A DNA stretch of 63,965 nucleotides, the filler included, from Reticulomyxa filosa (Eukaryota > Protista > Foraminifera), in assembly GCA_000512085.1 (NCBI GenBank). It is 16 parts of 16 records of this genome, joined end to end, with 100 filler letters (N's around TTAATTAATTAA, not from the genome) between each part and the next. Parts side by side here need not be neighbours in the genome. Positions count along the whole stretch, not along the records: positions 49,575 to 57,269 come from ASPP01017689.1; positions 57,370 to 61,164 come from ASPP01036818.1; 14 more parts are not named here. The stretch is one strand, 5' to 3'. Below the pieces are notes generated by a model. That model saw only the letters and a program-made list of their open reading frames with translations, had not been told where the DNA came from and ran no database searches. Every line of letters begins with the position of its first letter. Position 1 is the stretch's first letter. Shown here in pieces: positions 49,475 to 57,389 of the stretch. The translations under genes and the position numbers were made by a program.

Positions 49475-49631
49475 NNNNNNNNNNNNNNNNNNNNNNNNNN
49501 NNNNNNNNNNNNNNNNNNTTAATTAATTAANNNNNNNNNNNNNNNNNNNNNNNNNNNNNNNNNNNNNNNNNNNNCTCCTTAACTTGACGCGTATGGTTCT
49601 TTAAACGCTCCCGAAAATCTTAAATATCGAT

Positions 49632-50150
49632 TCAAAATTTAACTTGATTATAATCAACCACAAACCGCCAAAGTTTTTCCTTTCCTTTTGAAATGCCTAT
49701 TCTAGGGGTGGTTAAAACACTAAAATTCAAATCTATATCGGCAATATAAATCTCATTATCTCCAATGATATCTATATTATTATGCGATCTATCTATATTA
49801 AGTAGTTTGCACAATTTTCCCGGGCCATTTATAATTGTTTTCCTTTCATAATGCATACCCCCACGTATTAGGACTGCAGATCCTATTCCTTCTCTTTCAG
49901 TGACAATATTTAAGCAATTATAAATTCCATAAATAAGATATACATATAATTTACCAGCATCTCCAAACATTGGGGCTGTTCTTTTAGTTAAACCTTTAGC
50001 TGAATGAGATGCTGGATCATCTATTCCAACGTACGCCTCTGTTTCAGTTATAATAATCTTTTGATCTTTCCATACTAATTTCTTACCTATAAGGCTCTTG
50101 GCAACTTCAAGTGTAGGGTTTAAGAAAAATCCTCGATCTAATTTAATCAT
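49632..50150 (-). CDS. mpg: DNA-3-methyladenine glycosylase (MPG/AAG family)
   Basis: ITETEAY.G.DDPASH, YVYLIYG, AVLIRG, NGPGKLC, PRIGI, WRF. Confidence 0.95.
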   Translation of the reverse strand: MIKLDRGFFLNPTLEVAKSLIGKKLVWKDQKIIITETEAYVGIDDPASHSAKGLTKRTAPMFGDAGKLYVYLIYGIYNCLNIVTEREGIGSAVLIRGGMHYERKTIINGPGKLCKLLNIDRSHNNIDIIGDNEIYIADIDLNFSVLTTPRIGISKGKEKLWRFVVDYNQVKF

Positions 50151-50155
50151 GCTAA

Positions 50156-50488
50156 TTAATTGGTGGTTTCTTCTTTTAAATCTCTAAATTGATTTAAAGT
50201 TGATAGTAAGCAATTATGAAAATTGTTACTAATGTAAAATCTTAATTCATCGATAGTCATATTGCTTATTGAAGGTATTTTGCGTACTTCTTTGATAAAT
50301 TGTACTAAATTTTGAATTAAATAAGTAGAAAAATATATTAAAGAAGTATTAATTACTTGATAATTCTCTAACGTCAGGCCCGATTCTTGAAGCAGAACCT
50401 TTACTTTTTCATTTTCATGAGTACATAAAAATCTTAAAGATTCTAATCCATAATAAAATTTAGTATCTTTAAATTCAGGATCTACCAC
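50156..50488 (-). CDS. Hypothetical protein (bacterial)
   Basis: 110-aa ORF ending 5 nt before the mpg start on the same strand. Start uncertain. Confidence 0.6.
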   Translation of the reverse strand: MVDPEFKDTKFYYGLESLRFLCTHENEKVKVLLQESGLTLENYQVINTSLIYFSTYLIQNLVQFIKEVRKIPSISNMTIDELRFYISNNFHNCLLSTLNQFRDLKEETTN

Positions 50489-50512
50489 CTGACCTAGAAC
50501 ATTTAATATTGT

Positions 50513-50734
50513 TTAAAATTCCTTAGTTTCATAATCCGATGTAACACATCTTAGAAATAATTCTGATTTTTCTAAAAATTCTACGCTACTGAAACCAGCC
50601 TTTTTAATTTCATCAAAAATTACTTCCATGAAATTTTGAATTGTAAGCGCTATGATTGCCATACTTTCAGGAGAAAGGTTATTCAACTCTTCCTGTGAAA
50701 ATTCTTCAAACTCCCCTTTTACTACAAATCCCAT
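50513..50734 (-). CDS. Hypothetical small acidic protein (bacterial)
   Basis: 73-aa ORF co-oriented with the mpg cluster. Confidence 0.55.
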   Translation of the reverse strand: MGFVVKGEFEEFSQEELNNLSPESMAIIALTIQNFMEVIFDEIKKAGFSSVEFLEKSELFLRCVTSDYETKEF

Positions 50735-50799
50735 ATCAAGGCATAATTGTTTATACCTTGTATGCTAGCAATTAAATATTAACGATTTATTAACAAAAA

Positions 50800-51001
50800 T
50801 TATATTTTTTGGTAGGGAATAGGTTTACCTGATGAATCCAAGGCTAATTCACCATTTTCAAAAACTGCTGCGATATAATTGCCATGCCCAACTGTTTTAC
50901 CCATATACATAACAGGTTTAACTTGTTTTCCATTCAGCTTTTTCAATTTTGCAGATGAACCACGGTTTTCAATGTTGTTTTTCGAGCCTTTTTTTTGCCA
51001 T
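50800..51001 (-). CDS. Small basic hypothetical protein missed by the ORF track (+1 frameshift in an A8 run)
   Basis: Removing one A gives MAKKGSKNNIENRGSSAKLKKLNGKQVKPVMYMGKTVGHGNYIAAVFENGELALDSSGKPIPYQKI*. It is preceded by an AAGGT RBS-like site and a promoter. Confidence 0.7.
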
Positions 51002-51028
51002 TTTTAGTACCTTTATATTATTTTACAA

Positions 51029-51057
51029 TATATATGATTTTTAATGAGAAATGTCAA
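51029..51057 (-). promoter_or_regulatory. Sigma70-like promoter
   Basis: TTGACA-17 nt-TATATA on the minus strand, about 28 nt upstream of the ATG at 51001. Confidence 0.6.
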
Positions 51058-51083
51058 GAAGTGAGAAGATGTAAAATAATGCT

Positions 51084-52406
51084 TTAAATCACCTTAAAAT
51101 TAACTGAGATTTTAGGGCAAAAAAGCAATTGTAATCCATTAGCATTATTACGTATTTGGAACTTTAATGATTGCCATGGTCGCTTGCGTAAATCATCTTC
51201 CTTTACTGCAAATTGATACCATTCATATGATAATGCCCCTAACTCTGAATGTATTTGAGGAGTTTTATAATCGAACTCATAGCCTATTCCCTCTATCATA
51301 GCCTATTCCCTCTAATTCAAAATTTAATTCATTCAGTTTAGAATCTACATCGCTATGATATTGTTTCATTGCTCTTAAACATACCAACCTTTGACGCTCA
51401 ACAAATGGTTGATTAGATACAATTAACACATTAACTTTATCAACTTTGCTTTCTTGACTTGATAATACATCAAAAAGTAATTTACTTGAAAATATGCTGT
51501 ATCATAAGTTTCAGCTCTGTAGCCAGTTTTAACTACAGGAGGGAGCACTTCAATAGGCCTTTCACCGAAAACTACCTTTTTAATATCTTCAGACATAATA
51601 GCTTCGTCTAAAACTCTAGTTTCTCCATCAGCATAATTTATATAAGTTCTATTCTTAACCCTACCTAAAGGTAAATTCTCTTCTTTTTCATATTTAACAA
51701 ATGGTTGGTTATCATTGATTTTAAAGCCATTTTTAATAGCTAAATCCAGCATATATATTTTACCTAATTCAATATCGATATTCGGGCCATTATTAACTCC
51801 TTCGATTTCTGCCCATAACTCTCTATCCCCATTAAGAATACGTATAGTTTCAAATTGAATACCTGCATCTTCATATTTTTTAATGTACTCAAGTCGATCA
51901 AGAAGAGCTTGTCTGGAAGCACCTTGCACCCATACCTCATCATAATATCTATATTTAGGCTCTATTTTTGAAACCAAACCAAGAACTTGTGCACTTTTCA
52001 AATATTCTTCAGCGAAAACTATCAGCCAATCTTTTTCAAATATCTCATTACGCTCCTGTTTAATTTTTCTATCAAATGCAGTTTGTCCCCAATACGTGAT
52101 AAAATCTTGTATATCTTGCTTATCAAATAGTTCATTATTGAAAAGATTTTTTATAACATAAGTGCTGTTAAATGCCATAGGATCTATAGGATATGCCTTA
52201 GCATCATTCATAACGTTTAAAATATGTTCATAAATTAATAACGGATCTTGAAATCCACCCATTGAATTTACATCTTGCCATACTCTTTCTGGTAAAAAGT
52301 ACCCAGGAATATATAACATTGTAATAAAAGCTTTTTGCTGAGGTAGATTTTGCAAATACCCATCAACTCCGAATTCAGCTAGTACTTCCTCAAAACTATA
52401 TGACAT
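51084..52406 (-). pseudogene. Hypothetical protein (YdcF/DUF218-like fold suspected), split by two frameshifts
   Basis: The 327-aa ORF continues in another frame after a T-run at about 51471-51476 (DVLSSQ..VLIVSNQPFVERQ..ELEGIGY), then a 19-bp tandem duplication leads to EFDYKTPQIHSELG.. Confidence 0.7.
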
Positions 52407-52409
52407 AAA

Positions 52410-53045
52410 TTAAAGACTTTTTATCAGTTTTATTAATTCATTATGATCCAAGATATTAACAATATCTTTTTCAGGCATTTTACCATAAAAGATAGGAATA
52501 CATCCAGCTTTTTTCGCGCATTCAACATCTACTGGTGTATCTCCTACTAACCAAACTTGGCTATAGTCTTCTATTTCCAACTCTTTTAATATTTCAAAAA
52601 TGGGAACCGGGGATGGCTTATCTTCTGAAACATCCATGGAACCTATCATCTGATAAAAATATTTATTCCAACCAAAATGGTTAGCTTCTTTACGTAAAAT
52701 TGTTCCTAGTTTATTGCTAACAACTCCTAGATGAAATTTCTCTCGATGTAAATGTATCAACAATTCTTCTGCATATGGTAAAGGTTTTAAGTGTTCAAGG
52801 TGCATTTCATAATAATGCTTGTAAAATGTCTCTCTAGCTTTTTCATAATCACTACCAAAAATAGCTGGAAAACTGTCTTTAAGAGATTTATGGGCTTGTT
52901 CCATAGTTTCTTGTAAGGTAAGAACAGGTTTATTAAATTCTACAAAAGTCTTATTCAGAGTTTGATGAATTAATTTCCAAGTACCAACTAAGGTATTATC
53001 CCAATCAAAAATTATAGCCTTTGGTTTTTTTAAATTTTTAATCAT
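52410..53045 (-). CDS. gph: HAD-family hydrolase (phosphoglycolate phosphatase-like)
   Basis: IIFDWDNTL, VVSNK, KPSP, VGDTPVDVECA. Confidence 0.88.
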   Translation of the reverse strand: MIKNLKKPKAIIFDWDNTLVGTWKLIHQTLNKTFVEFNKPVLTLQETMEQAHKSLKDSFPAIFGSDYEKARETFYKHYYEMHLEHLKPLPYAEELLIHLHREKFHLGVVSNKLGTILRKEANHFGWNKYFYQMIGSMDVSEDKPSPVPIFEILKELEIEDYSQVWLVGDTPVDVECAKKAGCIPIFYGKMPEKDIVNILDHNELIKLIKSL

Positions 53046-53046
53046 G

Positions 53047-55367
53047 TTATTTTCTATTTAATCTTAATGAATTTATTATGACGCACAAAGAAGATAAAGA
53101 CATAGCTATTGCAGCAAACATAGGGTTAATATATCCCAAAATTGCAATCGGTATTGTTATAATATTATATAAAATAGCCATCGATAAATTCTGTTTCACT
53201 AATTGGTCTGCTTTAAACGCTACTTCAATTGTTTCTAAAATTCCAAATAAATCCTTTTGATAAATAATATCAGCATTATTTTGTGCAATATCTATCGCAG
53301 AAGAAGGAGACATAGATACATACGCTTTTTTTAAGGCAGCGGAATCATTCAATCCATCGCCAACCATCATACAATACTCCAGATTGGAAACAAAATCATA
53401 TTTTTCCTGTGGCTTTATTTCAGCAGTGTAGTTTTCAATACCTAAACCATTAGCAACTCTGGTTACAACAGATCTTTTATCTCCTGACAAAATCCAAATA
53501 TTATATTTACTCTTAAGCTTATCAATCACTAATTTAGCTTCATTTCTAATTTCATCACTAAACAATAATCTAATTGGATTTTTTTCCCCTTGCTTAAACC
53601 ATATCTCTGTAACCCCGTCTTCGATAATTAATTTTTTATCAATGTTGCATAAGTCCTTACTACCTAATAATAACTTTTCATCTTTATACTTAGCACTCAA
53701 TCCCATCCCTTTGATTTCATCAACTTGTAAATCAATGATATCACCATCGTATTCAGCTCTTAACGCTATAGATATGGGATGTTTACTCTTAGCAGCAAGT
53801 GAGGCTATCAACTGCATGGTAGGATCTGCTATCTGCTGTGAATTAATCAGTTTAAGTTTACCATATGTTAGCGTACCTGTTTTATCAAAAACTATTGTCT
53901 TAATATTAGCAATTTTTTCCAGAGCATCTTGAGATTTTAATAATATTCCTCTTTCCATCAATCTACTACTAGCAATGATCTGAACAATTGGAACAGCTAA
54001 ACCCAATGCGCAAGGACAAGTTATAATTAAAACAGCAACTGCATTAAGAAGGGCATTAATTGCGTCATAGTTATAAATTAACCAACCTATAAATGTTAAT
54101 GCTGATAATAATAGAACAACTGGAGTATAATACCCTGCAATTCTATCCGCTAACATAACGTATTTTGCTCTACCTTGCTCTGCGATTTCAATCAACTTAA
54201 TTATTTCACCTAAAACTGTAGAATCACCAAATTTTGTTATTCGTATTTTAATTGGTACTAATAAATTAACTGTGCCTGCATATACATAATCGCCTTCAGC
54301 TACATTAATTGGCGTCGTCTCTCCAGTTATTAAACTATTATCAACTTCGCTTTTTCCTTCTAGAATTACGCCATCTACAGGAATTTTTTCACCAACACTT
54401 ACAAAAGCAATAGCTCCTAATTCTACTTTGCTAATATGGATTAATTTTAACTTCCATCCTCAAAAATAGTGACTGTATTAGATTGTTGTAATATTAATTG
54501 TCGAGCTTTTTCTCTTGCTTTATGGCGAGAATGAATATCCAAAGATCTGCCTATTAAAAGAGCTAAGATCAGCATAGTAGCAGAATCAAAGTAAGTGTAA
54601 TCACCTCCTCTTATGAACTCCTCAATACTAATTAATGTTGTAGCAATAATTCCAATAGAAATAGGAACATCCATGTTATTGCGTCCTGCTTTTAATGTAC
54701 TGAACGCATTTTTAAAAAATAGCGAACCTGAATAAATGATGCATGGAATCGCAATTATCATACTAAATAAATGTAATATTTTACGAGTATATTCACCCAT
54801 TGAACCAAAATTATCTGCAAACCAAATTCCCATAACGATCATCATTAGCTGTACAGTTGCAAACCCTGAGACAGCTATCCCTCTTAAAATACTTTTTTCT
54901 TTTATATCATCTTTATCTTCTGTGATATCATGATCTACGGGCAGCAATTTATATCCGAGCTTTTGAATAATCTCTATAAATTTCAAATAATCATTTTTTT
55001 CACCATTCCAAGCAATATGCAATCTATTAGTTGAAAGATTTACTCTTGCATGAGTGACTAGAGGATCGGTTTTCAATGTTTTCTCTATTAACCAAATACA
55101 GGATCCACATTGGATGCCTTCTACCAATAAATTAATTTCAAACTGTTTTTCAAAAATGTGCTTAATTGAATTTTGGTAATTTAATTCGTTTTTAAATTCC
55201 TGAACTTTCATAGGGGTAGTGTTATAAAGGGTTTTACAATAACTATAATAATCATTTAAATTTAAAGCATTTATTATTTTAAATGCTGATTCACAACCAA
55301 AACAGCAAAATTTTATATTTTCTTTAGATATTTTTGAATTACAATGCAAACATTTATCATTTTTCAT
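53047..55367 (-). CDS. ccoI: Heavy-metal (Cu) P1B-type ATPase CcoI/FixI; single-base frameshift at about 54450
   Basis: N-terminal CxHC..FCCxGC, GIQCGSC, then after a one-base shift GEKIPVDG/TGE, CPCALG, DKTGT, HP, GDGLND and YN..AMSLSS. Confidence 0.9.
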
Positions 55368-55504
55368 TTAGTTTACCTAGAAAATACAGGCCCTGCCTAT
55401 CTAAATAGGTGTTTACAATCTTATAAAAACAACTATTTTAAATATAAGAAAATATAGTATCATTCTCTCGATTTGTTTAACATATAAATTAGTGGTAACT
55501 AATA

Positions 55505-56792
55505 ATGAAAGTAGAAATTCTCGAAAAAAGCGAACTTAAAAGAAAATTCAAATTTTCAATACCAGCAAAGCCTTTGCTCGAAAAAATAGACAACAAAATT
55601 GAAGAAGAAGCAAAAACTTTTAAGATGGCTGGGTTTAGAGAAGGAAAAGTTCCTGTTAATATTGTGAGAAAGCGTATCGGCGCGAATGTTTTATCAAGTG
55701 TTATTGAAACCTCTGTAGATGAAACTCTAAAAAGCTATTTTGAAACTAATAGTATCAGACCAGCTTTGCAGCCATTTGTTGAGATAGTATCTTTTGATGA
55801 TAAATCTGATTTAGTTTTTGATGCCACTATCGAGGTCTTTCCTGATTTACCTAAAGTTACATGGGATACCTTAGAAATTGAAATGTTTGATGTAGATATT
55901 ACCGATGAAGATTTAAAAAAGGCGCATGAAGACATATTAAAGAATTTCAAAAACTTTAATAAAGCTGACGATGCATATAAAGCGCAAAAGGTGATGCAGT
56001 CATTATTGATTTTGTTGGTAAAGTCGATAATAACGAATTCGAGGGTGGAAAAGGAGAAGGTATCAGACTTGAGCTAGGTTCCAACCAATTTATTCCTAGT
56101 CTTGAAGAGCAATTAATCGACGCTAAAGCTAGTGATAATATAAACGTTAATGTAACTTTTCCTGCTGATTATGCAAATAAGCAATTAGCTAGTAAACCTG
56201 CTGTATTTGAAGTTAAGGTACATGAAGTTTTAAAACCTGAATCTGTAAGTGATATAGATGATGACTTTGCCAAAAAATTAGGTTTAGAAAATTTAGATAA
56301 ACTAAATGAGATGATTAAACAAAAGATAAAAGCTGATTTTGAAGGCTTAGCAAGGCTTAGAACTAAAAAATTACTGTTTGATCTCATTGATGAAAAGTAT
56401 CAATTTTCAGTTCCTGAAGGCATGTTCAAGTTAGATTTTGATATGATGTGGAGCGAAGTTAAGAAACAACATGAAAAAAACCCTTCAAATTTTAACAAAC
56501 CTTTAAATGAACTTGAAGAGGATTACAAAAAAATTGCTGCTAGAAGAGTAAGACTTGGAATATTACTAGCTGAAACTGCTACAGAAAATAACATAAATGT
56601 AGATGATAAAGATCTTCAGCAAGCAGTATATGCAGAAGCCATGCAAAGGCCTGGCCAAGAGAAACTAGTTATAGATTTCTACTCTAATAAAGACAACTTA
56701 GAAAGATTAAAAAGACTTATCCTTGAAGAAAAAGCTGTTGATTTTATTTTAACTAAGGTCAAGACTAATAAAAAGAAGATAACTTTAAAAGA
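55505..56792 (+). pseudogene. tig: Trigger factor, frameshifted at about 55990, with degraded conserved residues and its C-terminus fused to clpX
   Basis: GFREGKVP, IIDFVGKVDNNEFEGG, VTFPADY, RRVRLGILL, EEKAVDFIL. Confidence 0.92.
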
Positions 56793-57004
56793 GCTATTAT
56801 GGAAGAAGCTTTATTAGATCTGATGTATGATGTCCAGGTACTAAAGGAATTAAAGAAGTTGTCATTACCCCTGAAGTAATTAAATCAAGTTCAAAACCAA
56901 TATTTATTCATGAAAGTAAAGAATCAAACCCTAATGACCCTAAAGGTTCTAATCATGAAGGCCATTCATCGGAAAAACCTTCTCAAAGTAAGAAAGTGAG
57001 CTAG
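56790..57004 (+). pseudogene. clpX: C-terminal remnant of ClpX ATPase
   Basis: RAIMEEALLDLMYDV / PGTKGIKEVVITPEVIKSSSKPIFI matches the ClpX tail (GLRSI.E..LLD.MY..P....EVVI...V....P). One-base frameshift at about 56833; stop at 57002-57004. Confidence 0.85.
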
Positions 57005-57389
57005 TTTTAATTACAATGTTTAATATAATTTTATAAATTAAACTATACCGTAATATCTTTTTAATATATAAAAGTTATTGTTCTAACCAATAATTGATTT
57101 GTATGCTTGAAGAATTGCTTGCTCCCTCAACACCTAGGGTATTTGACACTACCAAACCAGTTGAAAAATTACAAACTAGAAACCCTTCTCATCCTACATC
57201 ACTTGGAGTTTATCCACTTGAGAGCCTTTACCAATAGGTAGTTATACCATTTCCTGAAGTTAAATTAGTNNNNNNNNNNNNNNNNNNNNNNNNNNNNNNN
57301 NNNNNNNNNNNNNTTAATTAATTAANNNNNNNNNNNNNNNNNNNNNNNNNNNNNNNNNNNNNNNNNNNNAAAAAAAAAAAAAAGGGGAA

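Follow-up and report, generated by a model that had tools for sequence, protein, structure and literature searches.

A broken Rickettsiales locus in the Reticulomyxa filosa genome assembly, possibly that of an associated bacterium in partial erosion

Whose DNA is it, and are its breaks real? Both questions are raised by one contig of the GenBank assembly of the foraminifer Reticulomyxa filosa, which lies complete (7,695 bp) at positions 49575–57269 of the window, a stretch of 63,965 nucleotides composed of 16 parts from 16 records of this genome. The contig carries bacterial genes, among them tig (trigger factor), a remnant of clpX and ccoI, most of which are broken. A preliminary description, made from the sequence alone, had read it as decaying Rickettsiales-like DNA that belongs either to a symbiont in the course of genome reduction or to a symbiont fragment integrated into host chromosomes. 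Comparison with syntenic relatives establishes the taxonomic origin of the contig and its synteny, and shows where each lesion lies and of which type it is. That the contig is the locus of an associated bacterium of the "Namur" clade, partly and genuinely eroded, is the reading we favour, and we give it roughly an even chance of being right.

Judged by its sequence, the contig is DNA of a Rickettsiales bacterium related to the Midichloriaceae and belonging to the clade of the Namur endosymbiont (GCA_014116815.1, "Holosporaceae bacterium Namur", our locus L001), which bears out the Rickettsiales assignment made earlier. In a maximum-likelihood tree of Tig (47 rows) the contig falls into a 100/100 clade with Namur and the metagenomic proteins P0122, P0124, P0125, P0126 and P0129. 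This clade is nested, again at 100/100, in a larger group that also holds Jidaibacter and three metagenome-assembled genomes (MAGs) of Ca. Midichloriaceae, the family of the best-matching named genomes. The terminal branch of the contig Tig (0.16) is not long. A common gene order is found in Namur, in L002 (the metagenome assembly GCA_009771425.1) and in a JGI contig from sample 3300045996: genes for a protein of 191 amino acids (aa), a 67-aa protein and a HAD hydrolase are followed by ccoI on one strand, and tig-clpP, together with clpX where the contig reaches it, is divergent from them. The JGI contig also bears mpg, at its far end. Among the 30 alphaproteobacterial loci checked, the tig-clpP-clpX adjacency is nearly universal and ccoI adjoins tig only in L001–L006. 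Scanning the contigs of genomes with the CcoI piece alone gave no close relative, and a metagenome scan with the Tig piece gave nothing closer than L002. The closest relative at the DNA level is a soil contig (L083, JGI soil metagenome 3300003319, 1–1539; 75% identity), which has the same order of the HAD gene followed by an extra gene that none of Namur, L002 and the JGI contig has at this place.

The NCBI label of the Namur genome, Holosporaceae, is at odds with the Tig tree and with the gene order, which place it beside Jidaibacter and Ca. Midichloriaceae; the label looks wrong.

The lesions listed in the preliminary description (at least five single-base frameshifts, a 19-bp duplication, a large deletion and an in-frame stop) are all present, and each of them could be positioned against the syntenic homologues from Namur, L002 and the soil contig; there are about eight in total, five of them single-base frameshifts, and the deletion is of ~1.8 kb. 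The only intact genes are, as had been stated, mpg (172 aa) and the HAD gene (211 aa); the other six of the eight remaining genes are broken, and a ninth, clpP, is deleted. In tig, two tblastn high-scoring segment pairs (HSPs) cover residues 5–164 (67% identity) and 162–434 (79%) of Namur Tig with E effectively zero, and the frameshift between them falls in a run of four A (55986–55989) that is one base short, five being in frame. Beyond tig codon ~432 the sequence goes directly into ClpX residues 364–434, and the last ~13 codons of tig are swapped for 7 codons derived from the deletion junction. On the Namur scale the deletion measures ~1.83 kb and removes all of clpP and clpX codons 1–363. 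Its junction, AAAAGAG, fits a 5-base microhomology (Namur tig CAAGAG/TTT versus clpX TTAAGAG/CAA). We ruled out a false join made by the assembler at a repeat, as the junction homology amounts to only ~5 bases. The clpX stump carries a frameshift of its own at CC (56834–56835), again one base short: tblastn aligns RAIMEEALLDLMYDV in frame +1 and then PGTKGIKEVVITPEVIK... in frame +3, at 50–60% identity, with an E-value of 1e-9 to 1e-10 for the second HSP, and the stop at 57002–57004 gives a protein length equal to that of Namur ClpX. By their E-values, the matches of tig, the clpX stump and ccoI are not due to chance.

The tig frameshift also has a trace in the public annotation. The C-terminal frame of tig is 100% identical to the "hypothetical protein RFI_20447 [Reticulomyxa filosa]", a model that joins 55505–56017 to 56182–56814 and skips 56018–56181 as a GT..AG "intron" (GT at 56018). 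This intron is a gene-finder bridge over the frameshift, by which most of the FKBP domain is lost. Introns in prokaryote-derived genes of R. filosa have been used in a survey as proof against contamination (bioRxiv 10.1101/2023.01.27.525846). The case of RFI_20447 illustrates that such introns can be artefacts and that bacterial genes with frameshifts have entered the annotation of this assembly as eukaryotic genes with introns; counts of lateral transfer into R. filosa therefore need checks at the level of contigs.

In the 191-aa gene, on the minus strand, a TAA at 50513–50515 stands where both relatives have Asp (KEF-stop-TIL versus KEFDTLL), within a single tblastn HSP that keeps the gene colinear with L001 and L002 across the stop (51–52% identity, E 1e-58 to 1e-61). 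An alternative genetic code as the cause of this stop was ruled out, TAA also terminating five other genes of the contig. In the 67-aa-family gene a run of eight A (minus strand, 50989–50996), the sole 8-base homopolymer of the contig, follows straight after the ATG, and seven would be in frame; the gene matches the 68-aa protein of L001 and the 72-aa protein of L002 from residue 5/10 to the end (58–59% identity by tblastn), and the restored frame agrees with the relatives from "GSKNNI" on. The frameshift of ccoI lies at AA (minus strand, 54452–54453), where three A would be in frame; two tblastn HSPs span residues 1–305 and 306–780 of L001 CcoI with no residue lost and E effectively zero. The protein has the Pfam domains ATPase-cat_bd, HMA, E1-E2_ATPase and Hydrolase, scores 437.8 bits against TIGR01511 (cut-off 397), and retains the TGE, CPC and DKTGT motifs, all catalytic motifs being present.

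The extra gene is broken twice, its homologues aligning in frame -1, then -3, then -1. The first switch lies in a run of four T (minus strand, 51489–51492; five would be in frame) and the second is the 19-bp duplication at 51277–51314. Together the two shifts, -1 and +19, are divisible by three, so that the final 71 codons are again read in the original frame; the ~60 codons between the lesions hold several stops. In the soil contig this gene is in one frame through both sites and has no 19-bp duplication; both lesions are therefore derived in the R. filosa contig. The soil copy has its own in-frame TAG and TGA, at positions where the contig has Gln and Leu. The ratio of non-synonymous to synonymous substitution rates (dN/dS) between the two copies is 0.16, and each lineage seems to be losing the gene independently of the other.

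How far can these lesions be trusted? All five single-base shifts can be placed in homopolymers, of 8, 4, 2, 4 and 2 bases. Errors of sequencing could thus account for as many as five lesions, as the preliminary description had suspected of some of them; the sequencing platform was probably 454. This pattern fits pyrosequencing miscalls and genuine slippage equally well, the latter having the same bias. None of the six 7-base runs and none of the fifteen 6-base runs is shifted, yet two runs have gone from three bases to two. The TAA, the duplication and the deletion are neither homopolymer events nor errors of the pyrosequencing type, although a chimeric template, or for the duplication an unmerged 19-base overlap, is conceivable. 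That these three larger lesions exist in the organism, as we infer, appears to us rather probable. "Decaying", the word used earlier, is accordingly plausible for these three and doubtful for the five frameshifts, which may be errors.

Relaxed selection was looked for by counting changes at sites conserved in at least 97% of sequences. Tig has changes at 3 of 44 near-invariant sites, with a median of 0 among 115 relatives, and the contig ranks third of 116; the changes turn PGFE into PSLE and KGP into KRL (P405L beside a G-to-R change). These three changes are compatible with decay. The dN/dS values against Namur and L002 are uninformative on recent relaxation, the synonymous sites being saturated.

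A number of observations weigh against genuine erosion in a living associate of R. filosa. Besides the ease with which homopolymers accommodate every single-base shift, none of the 41 near-invariant sites of mpg is changed, so that there is no excess, and the 16 unique changes of CcoI in 242 columns are mostly conservative and fewer than those on the lone branches L005 and L006. Lesions in six of eight genes plus the loss of clpP, with tig, clpP and clpX among the casualties, would be extreme for living Rickettsiales. In a search of public reads the contig matched only two synthetic-metagenome runs, whose contigs of 158–224 bp copy the assembly, cover no lesion and thus lend no independent support. 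The GC content of the contig (0.308) fails to match that of the MAG of the published R. filosa symbiont (0.375). Finally, no second, intact Tig or ClpX of R. filosa occurs among the best 120 hits. Since CcoI and mpg have no excess of changes and the Tig branch is short, the erosion is either recent or not real.

If the erosion is genuine, we envisage the following course. The contig would be chromosomal DNA of an obligate intracellular alphaproteobacterium of the Namur clade, next to or within Ca. Midichloriaceae, which lived in or alongside the sequenced R. filosa culture and whose DNA was deposited and annotated as that of the host. We infer a location in the bacterial cell rather than in a host chromosome. 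The ancestral order would have been mpg, the 191-aa gene, the 67-aa gene, the HAD gene and ccoI, then tig-clpP-clpX on the opposite strand. On this locus three genuine mutations would have fallen, namely a nonsense codon, a slipped-strand duplication of 19 bp and a microhomology-type deletion of clpP and most of clpX, and the five single-base shifts, in runs of A, T or C, would stem from further slippage or else from miscalls in pyrosequencing and assembly. Measured against the divergence of the lineage, every lesion would be young. If the lesions are real, tig, clpP, clpX and ccoI have been lost recently, which would be unusual for Rickettsiales.

The rival that the preliminary description had put on an equal footing is a fragment of a Namur-clade symbiont in a Reticulomyxa chromosome, decaying neutrally. 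We consider it unlikely, even though several observations suit it. About one lesion per kb has struck almost every gene, including tig, clpP, clpX and ccoI, and amino-acid divergence is not raised, as predicted by a simultaneous and recent release from selection, and the two intact genes total only 1.15 kb and could have been spared by chance. The deposited assembly, in which no mitochondrial genes were found (PMC10127745), seems to have been cleared of contigs from organelles and from the main symbiont, the high-copy non-nuclear contigs having probably been removed, yet this contig was kept. Its GC also differs from that of the MAG of the extant symbiont. Low GC as such was rejected as a sign of nuclear decay: the soil relative L083 has a GC of 0.307, which makes low GC a trait of the lineage. 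Against an insertion speaks the contig itself, on which there is no host-like flank, host sequence, repeat or real intron, its ends being either bacterial or without a match and its sole annotated intron being the bridge over the tig frameshift; moreover, protist assemblies contain contigs of symbionts and contaminants far more often than nuclear insertions. The nuclear insertions of Wolbachia in insects and nematodes likewise consist of bacterial operons with frameshifts, stops, duplications and deletions and with little amino-acid divergence, but they are defined by host–bacterium junctions and nuclear read depth, and no such junction is visible on the contig. A narrower version, in which the fossil of a second lineage (Namur clade, ~31% GC) sits in an R. 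filosa chromosome and decays neutrally, we hold to be distinctly improbable; if true, it would be the first documented transfer of symbiont DNA to the nucleus in a foraminifer and the record of a lost or replaced symbiont.

Equally doubtful in our opinion is a purely artefactual origin of the damage, in which all genes are intact in the organism and the lesions stem from homopolymer miscalls in 454 data of low coverage, from a base-call error, from an unmerged contig overlap in the case of the duplication and from a chimera, of a read or of a join, in that of the deletion. The single-base shifts, confined to runs of 2–8 bases and including the only 8-base run, are what such a process could leave behind; the 19 bp of the duplicate equal k-1 at a word size of 20, which would suit an unmerged de Bruijn overlap; the proteins are otherwise well conserved, to judge from the CcoI motifs and the unchanged sites of mpg; and the assembly is in many small pieces (N50 3.6 kb; PMC13746701). 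However, miscalls that spared every 7-base and 6-base run would have had to strike two runs of three, the change of an Asp or Glu codon to TAA takes one or two substitutions, which are rare in pyrosequencing, and the deletion keeps strand and order, has a 5-base microhomology at its junction and leaves a stump with a frameshift of its own. The paired substitutions in two near-invariant motifs of Tig also argue for mutation. A redundant second copy decaying in a living symbiont genome, with the intact copy elsewhere, appears highly improbable. The genomes of Jidaibacter and of the Namur endosymbiont are large and repeat-rich (1.9–2.4 Mb), and nothing would keep a redundant copy in such a genome from decaying; the region occurs, however, once per relative within the locus fetched, and the search for a further tig or clpX of R. 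filosa described above argues in the same direction.

Returning to the favoured bacterial origin, with or without genuine erosion, is the bacterium the one already reported from R. filosa? The earlier suggestion of an undescribed system does not hold in its general form, a Rickettsiales associate of R. filosa having been published as a Midichloriaceae endosymbiont (Castelli 2024, PMC10847448; Zenodo 10.5281/zenodo.10324454). Its composition and its nearest relatives suggest that the R. filosa material held a second Rickettsiales lineage, from which the contig may derive. In Namur the homologous region has the same GC as the whole genome (0.343 vs 0.343), and the gap between contig and MAG fits a second, rarer bacterium as well as it fits a nuclear insertion. 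A census of ribosomal RNA (rRNA) in the R. filosa reads gave one Rickettsiales set, 93–94% identical to the endosymbiont of Acanthamoeba UWC8 (PMC10847448, supplementary file 7), and a partial 23S only 87% identical to a Rhodospirillales MAG; it lists no obvious second Midichloriaceae rRNA (PMC10847448). The association with Rickettsiales is already known; novelty may lie in the second lineage and in the condition of the locus.

The gene map (Table 1) was drawn from Pfam, NCBIfam and tblastn searches with the proteins of relatives, tig and ccoI being analysed with an X at the frame break. The GC content is uniform at ~0.31 along the contig, and GC at third codon positions is 0.20–0.24 in every gene (~0.21 in the core genes). 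Bacterial sequence extends from 49632 to 57004, i.e. from end to end apart from a head of 57 bp and a tail of 265 bp, neither of which matches any of the loci fetched (tblastx and blastn, E<0.05); the tail could be what is left of the next gene, or something different. Rfam and tRNA scans found no tRNA, rRNA or Rfam family on the contig.

Table 1. Features of the R. filosa contig, in positions of the window
Feature	Position	Strand	Evidence or remark
mpg, DNA-3-methyladenine glycosylase, intact, 172 aa	49632..50150	-	Pfam PF02245 E 1.1e-52; NCBIfam NF002004 237.5 bits vs cut-off 211
Gene of a conserved 191-aa family, in-frame TAA	50156..50734	-	tblastn of L001/L002 proteins
Gene of a conserved 67-72-aa family, frameshifted	~50800..51001	-	tblastn of L001/L002 proteins
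Extra gene, family of ~430-520 aa, broken twice	51084..52406	-	homologues, L083
Perfect tandem duplication, 2 x 19 bp	51277..51295 + 51296..51314	.	repeat search, 100% identity, spacing 19
HAD-IA family hydrolase, intact, 211 aa	52410..53045	-	Pfam HAD_2 E 2.4e-37
ccoI/fixI-type copper P1B-ATPase, one 1-base frameshift	53047..55367	-	tblastn, Pfam, TIGR01511
tig (trigger factor), one 1-base frameshift, 3' end replaced	55505..56817	+	tblastn; Pfam Trigger_N + Trigger_C
Deletion junction AAAAGAG	56787..56793	+	joins tig codon ~432 to clpX codon ~363
clpX 3' stump, residues ~364-434, frameshifted	56790..57004	+	tblastn
Tail, with a 47-codon frame free of stops: spacer of 17% GC followed by 170 bp of 38% GC	57005..57269		

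Some of the neighbouring genes deserve a comment. The 191-aa and 67–72-aa proteins belong to no Pfam or NCBIfam family. Their genes stay together beside HAD and ccoI in all relatives of the clade (L001: 4722–5297 and 6609–6815; L002: 1891–2466 and 3026–3244). The extra gene belongs to a family with 209 representatives at E<=1e-3 and likewise has no match in Pfam or NCBIfam; a protein atlas pointed to Rv3785_N (score 0.92), a lead that the Pfam scan did not confirm. The HAD gene, with a dN/dS of 0.13 against the soil contig, had been named "gph" in the preliminary description. This was over-naming: the protein scores below the cut-offs of all NCBIfam phosphoglycolate phosphatase and PpaX models, far below in the case of the former, and we call it a HAD-IA family hydrolase.

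Three further known systems invite comparison. The MAG of the published symbiont (1.31 Mb, 85% BUSCO completeness; PMC10847448) shares its host culture and its original reads with the contig and belongs in or next to the same family, but differs in GC as stated above. In the genome project of Trichoplax adhaerens (Driscoll et al. 2013, PMC3641634) contigs of Midichloriaceae type in a eukaryotic assembly posed the same choice between symbiont and lateral transfer; there, many contigs and depth information were at hand, whereas here we deal with a single, heavily broken contig known from the assembly alone. The closest sequenced genome is that of the endosymbiont of Acanthamoeba castellanii strain Namur, "Coprolita marseillensis" (bioRxiv 10.1101/2023.09.22.558946), with identities to the contig of 79% for Tig, 61% for CcoI, 52% for the HAD orthologue, 51% for the 191-aa protein and 58% for the 68-aa protein. 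It shares with the contig the order 191, 68, HAD and ccoI, followed by tig-clpP-clpX on the opposite strand. Unlike the contig, it has all of these genes intact and a somewhat higher GC (0.343), it lacks the extra gene and has genes for proteins of 257 aa and 65 aa elsewhere, and its mpg is not adjacent to the other genes.

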